Positions 34,701-39,869 of a stretch of DNA of 64,000 nucleotides are shown piece after piece. Made by a program: the position numbers and the translations under genes. The stretch covers positions 372,001 through 436,000 of the forward strand of contig CDRNVI010000063.1 of NCBI GenBank assembly GCA_977017575.1. The letters run 5' to 3'. The DNA comes from Paramoeba atlantica (lineage: Eukaryota > Protista > Discosea). Each line of letters begins with the position of its first letter. The first letter of the stretch is position 1. The notes beneath the pieces are model-generated. The model did no database searches. It was not told the origin of the DNA and worked only from the letters and a program-made list of their open reading frames with translations.

Positions 34701-35052
34701 GATGTGAGGAGGGCCTTCGCTGCCGCCCCAATGTAAGACGTGGCAGAGTTCTATTACAAATGTATATATTATATTAAAATGTGAAGGGCACTGGTCGAGC
34801 TCCATTGTGGTCGAGCTCCGCTGGTGAGAGAGCCTCGCAAGCTCCACACACCCTAGCGTGAGTCATCCCTGGTGGTGGAACAGAATATAACGACTGATCG
34901 ACTACTTCTTTGCCCTAGGATGCGAATCCATCGGGCATTGAAGTCACGGATGACGAGTCAGGCCACGCAACCTGACAGGTATTGCTTGTCTATCTGCGAG
35001 TGCGGCATCCCTCTGGGAAAGTCTGTGCGCGACTGACAGCGTACCACCCACG

Positions 35053-35109
35053 GAGTACTGTAATACCCGGTGCCGTTTCACACGAGCACTAAATAACTAG
35101 GGTGTACTC
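35053..35109 (+). ncRNA. Small covarying stem-loop motif (R motif), single copy
   Basis: ACCCG-GTGC..GCAC-TAAATAACTAGGGT closed by GAGTAC/GTACTC. Confidence 0.55.
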
Positions 35110-35161
35110 TGAACCCATAGCCAGTCATGGCCAAACGGGTTAAACAACAACAACAACAACC

Positions 35162-35863
35162 TTGGCACTTATATCTCGTCTTGGTCTCAGTCACCCGCGG
35201 CTTCCAGGAAACTTACAATGCCCGGGGTGTCGAGTCATTCTTGAGTCTTCGTCAGCCCTCTCGCACATAGCGGGATGTGTTCAGTGCTCTGGAAACAATG
35301 CCACGACGAAACATGATGCGCTGGTGTGTAGAATTTACGATCTGTGCATGAAGGCTGGGGTACCATGCGAGCGGGAGCCACGACAATTTACGACCTACAA
35401 ATGCTCCACTTGCGGGGAGTCGTTCCCGCATTGGCGCAAACGTGAGCACCAACAGATCTGCCGAAATGCTAGTCTTCACCGGTCCGGACCTGATATAGTC
35501 GTATATTGGGCGTCCGGTGAAGTCTTCTACGACCTCACTGTAATCCATGAATTGGCGCCGTCGAATTTGCGGCGAGGGAGTGGGGCCCTAATGAGGGATG
35601 CGATCGCACGGAAACATAATACGTACGTCGCATCGGGGATGATTCCGCAGGAACGTTTTAAATGCATCCCAGTCCTCTCCGGCGGCGCCATGCATCAAGG
35701 GCTCAAGACCCTTCTGCACACGCTAGCGGACTGCTGTGGGCTTGAAAGAGGGAAAACTTTGAACGAATTTTCGTTGCACCTTCAAGAGTTGAACGGATCA
35801 GTGGTATTTTCCCAGCTGAAAAATTATCTAACGCAGGAGACATCTCAGGAACCGGGCCTCTGA
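35162..35863 (+). pseudogene. F2 CCHC + RLE fragment
   Basis: CPGC..HIAGC..KHDAL, EREPR..SGPDI..DLTVIH. Confidence 0.85.
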
Positions 35864-36967
35864 ACAGGTTTTTAGTTTCGGTCTATTAGAAATCTTTGGT
35901 ATTATTATAAACGTTTTTTTTGTATTAACCTGAACACATAACATAACATAACATTAAGGATATAAAGTATTCAAAAGAATAGAATACAATATATAATATC
36001 ATTTTTGGGATAGTTTCTCTTCGAAAATTGAGAGAAGGGGGGAAGGTGAACATTTCTCATTTCTCATTATCCTACGTGACTTCCTGCTGTGAGAGCTTAT
36101 AGGATTTCATGGGAGAAATGGCTCCGAGATGTTTTTTTTGCATGGAAAAAAGAAAAGGCATGAACTCGGATCATGGAACCAATTTGCCGCTAACGAAAAA
36201 CTCACGAACAACAAGCCAAGTACATACAACGATTTGCTTTATACAACAGCCATACCCGCACACACATCGAAAGAGTGGAACGAGAAACTAACACGCGTCG
36301 TGGAAGAGATAGGTGTAGACACAACGCCGGATCAAGGACACGATAAGTATCGAGACGAAGAGGACAGGTATTTCAGTGTGACGGCCTCTAAAACGCAGGA
36401 ACCTCCAGTCATAAAGAAGCTTTCAAACGGAATGCAGCTGCGACCCAGAGCATCTCACAATTCAAGTCAGGCACAAGAAGCTATTCGAATCAAATCTAGC
36501 CCACACTCGGGTTCAAACACGAGAAACCATGAACGGAGTACGCCCGATCGCAGTAGGAGAAACGCTCAAAAAAGTGTGGTACGATTCTCCTCCAAAGACA
36601 CGAAGAAAAGATTAAAGACTTTTTCCATCCGGTTCAACGCCGTGTCCTGCAAAGAAACGCATGCGAAGGAATAGTTCACACCATAGCAAAAAGAATATGA
36701 GGAGGGATACACCATCCTAGCAGTTGATTACGCGAATGCCTACAACACACCTACACGACAATTAATCTACGACGCCCTGAAGAAGTGCAATATCTTCAAA
36801 CCCTTCATGCGACTATTTGCCCTAGAGTACGGAGCTCCATCAGATCTTCGCTTCTTTGCGAACGACACTCTACATTCTACGATAAAAAGTACCTCAGGAG
36901 TACGACAAGGATCAGCGCTCTCATCGCTGTACTTCTGCGCCCCCATCCAGGATTCCCTGAAAGACAT

Positions 36968-37516
36968 GATGATGATGATGTATTGGGCCTTTTGACTCCG
37001 AAAAGTTATGGCCCCTCAACTCCCCAAACGGGCAGTCCGAATACGTCTTGCGACGTATCCGGAGAGCCAGCCATAGCAAGCTACGGCTGACCTCCGCTTG
37101 GAGAGGAGTTAGGTTACAGCTAGGGAGGTGGGGTGCGCTATACCCCTGCGCCTTAGGTAATGCAAATAAGGCGCCCCTTGACCAAAAAAACCACTCTATC
37201 TTTTGAGGGTGGATAAAAAAAACACAAACACATTCCAAAGATTAGCCCGAATGGCACCCACCCTAGTTTCTTAGTACCTTGTTATATTCGGTACCGGGCG
37301 GTGCCACCCATTCTACGTTGCCAGAATGACATCCACCCTAATTATTTAGTGCCTCGTTTTACTGGCACCGGGTAGTGTCATCCATATTGTATTCATCGTA
37401 TTCACCCTAGTTCTTTAGCGTCTTGTTATGCGACGCCGGGTGAGTTAGCTCGGGAAGCTGGGATCGCTAAGTCCCATCATCCGACATAAGCCGGATGCCC
37501 TGACATAAGCCGGATG
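36968..37516 (-). mobile_element. Non-coding SINE/retrozyme-like insertion with three R motifs
   Basis: 13-bp TSD CCCTGAAAGACAT (36955-36967, 37517-37529); (CAT)n tail on minus strand; motifs at 37253-37305, 37328-37379, 37401-37444. Confidence 0.8.
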
Positions 37517-39344
37517 CCCTGAAAGACATAGAAGAGCTCTTCCCAGAAGTCAAAGTAAGAGCGTACATGGATGATATTACACTCTCCTCCCGCGATCCAG
37601 CTACGCTCGAAGCCGCGTTCCTCCACCTACGCGAAGCATCAAACGATTTGGGCCTGAAGGTCAACTTCTCAAAATGTGAATGGTTCAAAAAAGCGAGCGA
37701 CTCAGCATACAATCAAGAGCAAACCCCGCAGTCGCTGCAAGATCTGGGAATGAGTGCAACGCATGAAACTATCAAAATCTTGGGCGCGTACATTGGAAAC
37801 GATCAGATTGTCAGCAACCTCCTAGTTCGCAAGCTAGAAAAACACAAATGTCTGTTTCGGCGACTTTATCGTATGGGTCCCAGCAATCTCTCCCCCGCTA
37901 TTCTGCAAAAGTGTACTAACCCCAGACAAGACTACCACATCCGAGTGCATAGACCCGACGCCTCTTTGGAGCTGGCGCAACAATTTGATACAGAAATCGG
38001 CAATATAGTTTCCCATTGGTTTCAGGCACGAGGAGATTCATTAAGGCTAGCTTCATTGCCCGAAAAACTCGGAGGACTCGGTTTAACACCATCATGCTTG
38101 AAGCACAAATACTTCTACAGTGCGTCTCGTCGATCCATTGAAGAGCAAGGAAAATCCCTTAACGCTCCGGTGGAGAAATCGAAACACTAAGAAGATTTCA
38201 GTGCTGCCAGAAAACAAATCAACAGCGAGCAAGATGGCTACGAAAGCAATCAGGGGAGAAAAATGATCGCCGCTGAACTGCGAAGAAAAAACTGAATGAT
38301 ATACTCGATCGCACGACAAATTCCCACAACCATCTGCACTCCACGAGCAACTATGTGAACCCCTATCTCTTCAGATATAGTGTCATGATGCGCCTGGGTT
38401 GCACGCCCCCCGAAATGCTAGACCTCATTCCATGCCCTGGATGCTCAACCGAACTGTCTGCAAGCAACGCCCTGCACCACGTAGCCGGATGTACACAATG
38501 CTCTGGAGTTAATGCTACAAGAAAGCACACACATCTTATTCGGTTCCTTGGGGAATTGTGCGCGAAAGCCGGTCTGCCGCACGTGCTCGAACCAAGAGTT
38601 CATACATCATTCTACTGCACGAAATGCAAGGCCTCCATCTCGGATGAAGCAGTTGAGAACCATCCCTGTAAAGCGCGACGCATAAGATCAGGACCTGACC
38701 TTGGGATCATGTGGCTTACCATCGGAGAGGTGCTATACGACTTAACGGTAGTACACACATGTGCATCAAGCCACATAAAATCAACTCCTGAACAACTGAT
38801 GCAGAATGCTCTGGAAAGAAAGAACAAGAAGTATGTGGTGGAAAAGGGTATTTCAACGCAGGAATTTAGTTGCCTGGCGGTTACAGAGTTCGGACAACTC
38901 CATCAAAATACCAGGCGATTGTTGGAATGCTTAGCGAAACGGTCAGAAAGAAATGTCAATGAAGTCAAGGAAGAGTTTCAGCTAGAGATTGAAAAGATGA
39001 ACGCCTACACAGTAGCTAATCAACTGAGAAAGTACATGACACCAACTCAATGGCTGGGAGAACTCCAACAATAAACAAGTAGCAGCTGATTAATGCAACG
39101 AATATTAATATTACCGATCCAGCTAGCGCCTGTCTGAATACCAAACGTTTGTTTAATTCACCCCTTTTTGTTTTTTTTTCCAAACTCGAATACGTAAAGC
39201 AAAGATATGGAATAGCAATAACAAAAGGAAAAGGGGATCCGTCCTTTTTGAGACTTTAAGGATAAAGTCCTCCTTTAAGGAGGATACATCCGTTCCTCTC
39301 TTCTCTCCTTCTCCTCTGCGATTGACTGATTTTGTTTTGATGGA

Positions 39345-39403
39345 GGCACCATCCGGTACCAAATACATATATAACAAGGTACTAAATAACTAGGATGAGT
39401 GCC
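39345..39403 (+). ncRNA. R motif in an F2 3' region
   Basis: GGCACCATCCG-GTACC..GGTAC-TAAATAACTAGGATGAGTGCC. Confidence 0.55.
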
Positions 39404-39869
39404 ATGCGGGCTTGTTTTTATATTGTTTACGAGAGTCTGATATTTTATGGAAACATGGGAAAAGGGGAAAGTGGATAAGGGGACAGTAAGGGGAAAAGCA
39501 GGTAAGGAGAAAACGGGTAATGGGTTAGTGAGTAAAGAGGAAGTGGGAAAGGGATAAATTTAGGGTAGGATAAATTAGGGCAGGATAAATTAGGGTAAGA
39601 AAAAAAAATACAAAAAAAAGTGGGGATAGTCGCGCGGAGCACTGTGGGGAGAACGGCGGGGAGTGAAGTTGGGAGCGTGGCGGAAGCGGGGAGCGCGGCG
39701 GGAAGCGGGGCGAGGAGCGCGGCAGGGAGAGCGGCGTGAGCGCGGCGGGGAGAGTTGTTGTTGTTGTTGTGCAGGCCGTTTGTCGCCGCAGCGATATGGC
39801 CTCCTAAGGGGGTATTAAACAAAAAGGGGATATTAAACAAAAAGGGGGCATTAAACAAACACTGCACTA

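Follow-up and report, generated by a model that had tools for sequence, protein, structure and literature searches.

In LINE/SINE pairs of the stringent type, the 3' tail of the LINE is the feature that its protein recognises (PMC1636434, PMC4176376), and in kinetoplastids the RIME, NARTc and SIDER elements are short versions of ingi/L1Tc (PMC12278014). Plant retrozymes are LTR-type elements with hammerhead ribozymes, direct repeats of 300–400 bp, a PBS and PPT, and 4-bp target-site duplications (PMC4918200). The locus analysed here lies in a stretch of 64,000 nucleotides of Paramoeba atlantica DNA (the window; contig CDRNVI010000063.1, positions 372,001–436,000), in which a 549-bp insert (window positions 36968–37516, with the minus strand as element sense) splits the RT gene of a LINE. 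We interpret this insert as a complete copy of a non-coding retroposon that depends on a LINE and was active recently; it is SINE-like and without a recognisable Pol III head. Judging by their sequences, the retroposon and a 1145-codon LINE found elsewhere in the assembly have their tail in common and make up a conventional 'stringent' pair. Table 1 lists the features of the insert and its surroundings.

Table 1. Features of the retroposon insert and of the neighbouring LINEs (window coordinates; '.' in the strand column, no strand assigned)
Feature	Coordinates	Strand	Evidence or remark
Same hairpin in the upstream R2-like LINE, close to its 3' end; the (CAA)6 tail (35147-35165) follows after ~30 nt	35054..35117	+	
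Host LINE, upstream half of the interrupted RT gene, through RT motif B	36129..36967	+	
Left 13-bp target-site duplication CCCTGAAAGACAT	36955..36967	.	Single copy in empty-site paralogue
(CAT)n tail, retroposon 3' end	36968..36980	-	Family copies end in CATCATCATCATC, then the duplication
3' terminal domain, predicted multi-hairpin fold; with the tail, the 148 nt common to the partner LINE (~96% identity)	36981..37115	-	LINE matches L073:9625-9776, L075-L079
Spacer: U-rich tracts and two further predicted hairpins; unmatched elsewhere in the window	37116..37251	-	
Hairpin copy 3: inner GUACC/GGUAC, outer GGCACC/GGUGCC	37252..37308	-	-28.0 kcal/mol, z -4.8
Hairpin copy 2: inner GUGCC/GGCAC	37327..37383	-	-27.2 kcal/mol, z -6.1
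Hairpin copy 1: inner GCGUC/GACGC, short outer stem	37396..37446	-	-16.9 kcal/mol, z -4.3
Head: 1.6 units of a 19-nt repeat (GTCAGGGCATCCGGCTTAT), two small hairpins	37447..37516	-	Hairpins compensated in 82% relative
Right 13-bp target-site duplication	37517..37529	.	Single copy in empty-site paralogue
Host LINE, downstream half: RT motif C onward, Cys/His-rich C-terminal domain; degenerate, several stops	37517..39074	+	
Same hairpin in the host LINE 3' UTR, ~270 nt past the stop codon	39346..39408	+	

The insertion is proven by its empty site: a host-LINE paralogue on another contig (C20; L034:5950-6020, minus strand), 98.7% identical, is uninterrupted and has the 13-mer only once. Read on the plus strand, the window sequence across the two junctions is ...GGATTCCCTGAAAGACAT / GATGATGATGATGTATTGGGCC ... 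GCCGGATG / CCCTGAAAGACATAGAAG (slashes mark the edges of the insert), and the tail appears as GATGATGATGATG on this strand, i.e., (CAT)n in element sense. RT motif B (GVRQGSALSSLYF) lies just upstream of the insert and motif C (YMDDI) just downstream, and Pfam RVT_1 matches the RT piece downstream of the insert (E 2.3e-5). An earlier note, made from the sequence alone, had described a 549-bp insert with a 13-bp duplication and a (CAT)n tail splitting an RT ORF, and the empty site in the C20 paralogue bears this out. At the 5' junction, six nucleotides of the right duplication (CCCTGA) also match the element's 5' repeat unit; since these nucleotides (TCAGGG in element sense) are common to target and element, we read this as a microhomology junction. 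The C20 paralogue bears its own copy of the same retroposon, at a different position.

Further insertions, which the same note had suggested looking for, are plentiful. A search with the insert as query against the whole 45.7-Mb assembly gave 294 first-look candidates and at least 50 matches at 92–100% identity, and the 3' terminal 20-mer of the retroposon has 69 exact occurrences in the genome. We oriented 30 family copies by their tails and surveyed their duplications and ends: all 30 end in the same tail sequence followed directly by their duplication, and clear target-site duplications of 8–15 bp are seen in about 20 of them. Nearly all duplications in the family begin with AT or AA and are in register with the tail, which would follow from annealing of the nicked target end to an RNA tail of (CAU)n. 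Among the scored copies, roughly one half are full length and have all three hairpins intact, and the remaining ones are 5'-truncated, starting at element positions 47, 52, 56, 66, 92, 115, 133–137 and 196 (numbered from window position 37516 on the minus strand). The family thus has variable-length duplications, a 3' repeat tail and 5' truncation, in addition to the empty site; the first three of these marks point to LINE-type target-primed reverse transcription (TPRT) and argue against both an LTR-type and a circular-RNA element.

Some family copies depart from this pattern. Four of them start precisely at the first base of hairpin 2 (GGATGACAC; C3:724919-725335, C14:465119-465530, C27:28750-29167 and C5:19024-19434), which may reflect a subfamily with two hairpins, a stop of the RT or processing of the RNA. 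In three others the head is found about 1.2 kb upstream of element positions 130/170–549 (C54:121920-123538, C54:98751-100554 and C45:296088-297706), and these copies are either interrupted by another insertion or representatives of a longer family variant. We also note one copy (L024:2011-2082, on C42) that sits within the conserved loop strand of another element's hairpin, with the duplication ACCCTAGTTTCTT.

The only direct repeats of the element are the hairpin units of 69–75 nt, which are 64–79% identical to one another, and the flanking 13-bp duplication. Folded as a whole, the element gives -212 kcal/mol (z -6.7) in the sense orientation, and z -3.6 in the antisense. It is short, non-coding and dispersed over many contigs, and has its 3' end in common with a LINE, all of which are properties of SINEs. 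We rejected the assignment to SINEs in the strict sense for want of a Pol III-type head: ARAGORN found no tRNA in the window, the head has no similarity to tRNA, 5S or 7SL according to ARAGORN and Rfam (at the gathering score and at E up to 10), and a scan of the head for A/B boxes did no better than scans of shuffled sequences. Long arrays of the 19-nt head repeat were not found in the genome. A relative of the first 300 nt of the element, 82% identical and with a different 3' half, lies at L038:2940-3430 (C30:446940-447430). Upstream of it are a spliced-leader relic (CTGTACCTTGTTG) and a proline-rich ORF of 68 codons, whose stop codon falls inside the retroposon 'head', and the head may have descended from the 3' part of a trans-spliced transcript. 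Spliced-leader relics ending in CAGTTTCTGTACCTTGTTG are found elsewhere in the window, and we take the genome to be of a trypanosome-like, euglenozoan kind.

Two loci contain a second kind of element that shares only the last 148 nt of the insert. In this element, the partner LINE, the ORF (ending in ...LAGHIARM...KPKV) and its stop codon are followed after about 30 nt by one hairpin, and some 25 nt further on come the 148-nt domain and (ATC)n; the domain plus tail is about 96% identical between the retroposon and the end of the LINE 3' UTR. The partner LINE ORF matches RVT_1 at E 1.5e-35, and open frames of 1145 codons are present in two copies that are 99% identical (e.g. C48:219346-222800, minus strand). 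Its RT finds its best match among solved structures in human L1 ORF2p (4e-26, vs 6e-14 for R2) and is about 21% identical to the RTs of the window LINEs. A relative with 43% identity (C66) shows, within the same frame of 1178 codons, a match to Exo_endo_phos (APE), from which we infer that the partner LINE has an APE domain of its own. Among the Exo_endo_phos hits (150 of 210 candidates scored), none lies inside the window and none beside the partner LINE copies, whose N-terminal 600 codons fall outside the sequence read. The 1145-codon LINE is the likely mobiliser of the retroposon. We further note a stem in the 148-nt domain (37060-37090, minus strand, vs L073:9650-9680) in which the retroposon has a G-U pair and the partner LINE has A opposite C. 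Both are wobbles of similar geometry, and the position may be a conserved recognition feature.

In element sense, the 5' part of each hairpin unit consists of an outer stem, CC(C)G, an inner stem of 5–6 bp and a loop ending in A(A/C/G)C(A/G)A, and the 3' part consists of the inner stem again, UAA(A/G)NAA(C/U)UA, GGGU and the outer stem; the conserved one-sided loop region of 9–10 nt reads CUAARNAACUAGGGU. When six copies (the three in the insert and those of the host LINE, the upstream LINE and the partner LINE) were folded alone, all six gave the same shape, a hairpin with a one-sided loop of 9–10 nt, at -17 to -28 kcal/mol (z-scores of -2.5 to -6.1). Pairs were counted in 13 representatives aligned by MAFFT, so that the counts were not fitted to a covariance model: 88.6% of the cells are paired, as compared to 27–48% when the partners are slid by 1–3 columns. 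The inner helix is 98.5% paired in these representatives, with changes on both sides in four of its five pairs and one-sided changes in none. A covariance model, a check that the earlier note had proposed, was built from 14 copies and gave 126 hits (45 distinct) in the retrieved loci, while on the whole assembly its hits saturated the search; the 126-hit alignment shows the same picture of covariation. The inner stems in the window (GTACC/GGTAC, GTGCC/GGCAC and GCGTC/GACGC) and at other loci (GCATC/GATGC, GTGTT/AACAC and GTGTC/GACGC) make at least six types, with the unpaired strand constant throughout; the three covarying motifs with a conserved unpaired strand that the earlier note had described are therefore confirmed against the slid controls. 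Frequent G-U pairs, together with the stronger z-score of the sense fold, indicate that the structure belongs to the sense RNA.

The core pattern of the hairpin has five matches in the window (0.10 expected), and its core CTAMNNAAYTAGGRT occurs 414 times in the genome, vs four times for the reversed control. The 82% relative of the element retains all three hairpins through compensatory changes (e.g. GGCACC/GGUGCC to GACACC/GGUGUC). That stems and loop are kept in units only 64–79% alike, and compensated again in this relative, argues for selection on each hairpin as RNA. Outside this genome, the strict motif pattern gave two hits in metagenome contigs, neither of them convincing; one was rejected as a coding-like chance match and the other as having no inner stem in register.

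Beyond the insert, the hairpin is found behind quite different LINEs. The single copies that the earlier note had placed near 35053 and 39345 were both recovered (Table 1). They belong to two LINEs that are 33% identical over the C-terminal part of the RT, and the nearest solved structures of the intact one of the two are R2 proteins. The first 15 nt of hairpin 2 are also found 48 nt past the end of the ORF in four copies of the APE-type LINE related to the partner LINE at 43% identity (C66:329577, C29:115472, C29:130057 and C54:82721), and the terminal 20-mer of the retroposon is absent from these four copies. The hairpin is a conserved sense-strand structure that at least two distant groups of LINEs (R2-like and L1-like, with RTs about 21% identical) have in their 3' UTRs, common to elements that depend on them. 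Three hairpin copies, behind the C-terminal end of a LINE ORF, are also part of the unit of tandem arrays that repeat about every 1863 bp (C192:1-43600 and C85:52000-91500; L031:1-8000), together with a 14-nt minisatellite and long A runs; the arrays look like head-to-tail stacking of 5'-truncated LINE 3' ends. Its presence behind differing LINEs, in arrays and in the retroposon indicates a module that moves among retroelement 3' UTRs and is distributed more widely than any terminal domain.

Other features of the window LINEs are as follows. The Cys/His-rich C-terminal domain of the host LINE (CPGC...GC.QCSG...GPD...YDLTV.H), a candidate endonuclease, has no Pfam match and no significant sequence match in PDB. 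The ORF at 35162-35863, right after the (CAA)6 tail, is 38% identical (E 6e-52) to this C-terminal domain (38355-39074), so we consider it a 5'-truncated LINE fragment inserted at the tail of another LINE, and rejected its reading as an N-terminal zinc finger. The homology between two copies of the host LINE stops in three repeats of 15–16 nt, GGATAAATTAGGG(T/C)A (window 39548-39598), which contain the telomere-type TTAGGG.

How these parts might work together can be put as follows. The retroposon would be transcribed, probably within read-through transcripts, and its RNA would fold; the shared 3' domain would be bound by the partner LINE protein, which would nick the DNA where the duplication starts with A(T/A). 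The nicked end would anneal to the (CAU)n tail and prime reverse transcription, and the 5' end would be joined via microhomology. Partner specificity and priming would then come from the 148-nt domain and the tail, and the conserved-loop hairpins would be an additional cis-acting handle for recruiting or assembling the retrotransposition RNP, which the parasite would have tripled in order to compete for the machinery. We favour, with moderate confidence, this role of the hairpin as a cis-acting handle that would help to assemble the retrotransposition RNP and was multiplied by the parasite. The suggestion of an RT-recognition signal exploited by a parasite, made in the earlier note, is upheld as far as the anatomy goes, as the hairpin lies in sense orientation in LINE 3' UTRs and the last 148 nt and tail are common to the retroposon and a LINE. 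Other observations speak against the handle: four copies start at the first base of hairpin 2, the retroposon's hairpins are 270–460 nt away from its 3' end, recognition by the partner RT could be due to the terminal 148-nt domain alone, and a common factor (host protein, export or stability) explains the sharing of hairpins at least as easily as RT binding, because the RTs are only about 21% identical and the 3' ends differ.

The strongest rival, which we consider rather unlikely, follows from the last point: the hairpin would bind a host factor (for RNA export, stability, localisation or 3'-end definition) and not a LINE protein. Any retroelement transcript in this polycistronic, trans-splicing genome would gain from such a signal, and unrelated LINEs and their parasites would have exchanged and multiplied it. 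The presence of one hairpin in LINEs whose RTs and tails are so unlike would have a simpler explanation in this way: the motif is found in LINE groups whose RTs are about 21% identical and whose terminal domains differ, the tails of hairpin-bearing LINEs range from (CAA)n and (ATC)n to the TTAGGG-containing repeat, the hairpin is present in one to three copies at a variable distance from the 3' end, and the terminal 148-nt domain already accounts for partner specificity. However, no Rfam element matches the hairpin, all of the contexts examined are retroelements (host mRNAs were outside the survey), and the metagenome contigs contain no exact-pattern relatives with a convincing structure. As a tentative extension, the hairpin could be a clade-independent 'passport' module, exchanged among R2-like and L1-like LINEs, amplified in parasites and acting via a common factor, not via the element's own RT. 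Less likely than such a module, it might be an element for RNA processing, with 5' ends being set at the base of the hairpin (cf. the four copies that start at hairpin 2).

It is improbable that the three hairpins are now functionless in the retroposon, as pieces of LINE 3' UTRs that template switching had brought together and that were then inherited passively. Such an origin is favoured by the evident modularity of the element, with its head and hairpin region recurring at 82% identity in front of a different 3' half and its 3' domain recurring on a LINE. Yet the stems are compensated and the loop sequence kept although the units have diverged from one another, and the 82% relative compensates once more, where neutral decay would have broken the stems.

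A new small self-cleaving ribozyme or RNA-processing site, with the element as a retrozyme-like parasite, was the other suggestion of the earlier note, and although covarying stems, invariant unpaired nucleotides, the tandem arrangement and the four copies starting at the first base of hairpin 2 (as RNAs cut just 5' of a structured element would) speak for it, we regard it as very improbable, because the motif resembles none of the hammerhead, twister, HDV-like, pistol, hatchet and hairpin models and is a single hairpin with a one-sided loop of 9–10 nt that lacks the junction or pseudoknot seen in known small ribozymes, reverse transcription passed through all three hairpins in about half of the genomic copies scored, which are full length, the other truncation points are scattered, and the insertions have a tail and 8–15-bp duplications instead of 300–400-bp direct repeats and 4-bp duplications (PMC4918200). 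In Rfam, whose search the note had proposed, no ribozyme family matches the window at the gathering score on either strand, and at E up to 10 the region 34900-39700 gives chance-level snoRNA/sRNA hits only; no known family matches the hairpin, in agreement with the note's own remark that no hammerhead or twister core is visible. Of the retrozyme hallmarks looked for in the element, flanking direct repeats, PBS, PPT and 4-bp duplications are all absent. The element is most probably a SINE-like LINE parasite and not a ribozyme-bearing retrozyme.

With this locus, a euglenozoan genome that has been little studied gains a well-defined pair of LINE and parasite, and no new ribozyme class. It also supplies a compact and strongly covarying RNA hairpin that is directly testable as a retrotransposition signal, and its tripling and its presence behind very different RTs make for a convenient system in which to ask whether it is the enzyme of the element itself or a cellular factor common to all that reads such 3' UTR modules.

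Among known systems, plant retrozymes resemble the retroposon in that they are small, do not code for protein and contain a structured RNA motif more than once (PMC4918200). They differ from it in their hammerhead ribozymes, 300–400-bp repeats and PBS/PPT, for which the retroposon has no known ribozyme and no such repeats or PBS/PPT, and instead short duplications of 8–15 bp, a simple-repeat tail and 5' truncation. The likeness to RIME, NARTc and SIDER is that these are also non-coding and LINE-dependent, with a euglenozoan host, LINE-related ends and no Pol III-type head; their tails are poly(A) and their 5' signature is that of ingi/L1Tc (PMC12278014), whereas the retroposon has a (CAT)n tail, a head with its own 19-nt repeat, and a body built of repeated 3' UTR hairpins. 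In the eel UnaL2/UnaSINE1 pair and the zebrafish LINEs, a short non-coding element and a LINE likewise have in common a conserved 3' end with stem-loops and a short-repeat tail (PMC1636434, PMC4176376), and target-site duplications and 5' truncation are also common to these pairs and to the retroposon. As compared to the fish pairs, the retroposon is without a tRNA, 5S or 7SL head, the common terminal block is 148 nt and its recognition is putative, and upstream of this block there is a further hairpin module, which is present three times in the parasite and is common to unrelated LINE groups. What this locus adds is a hairpin that is tripled in one retroposon family and present behind an L1-like LINE as well as behind R2-like ones.
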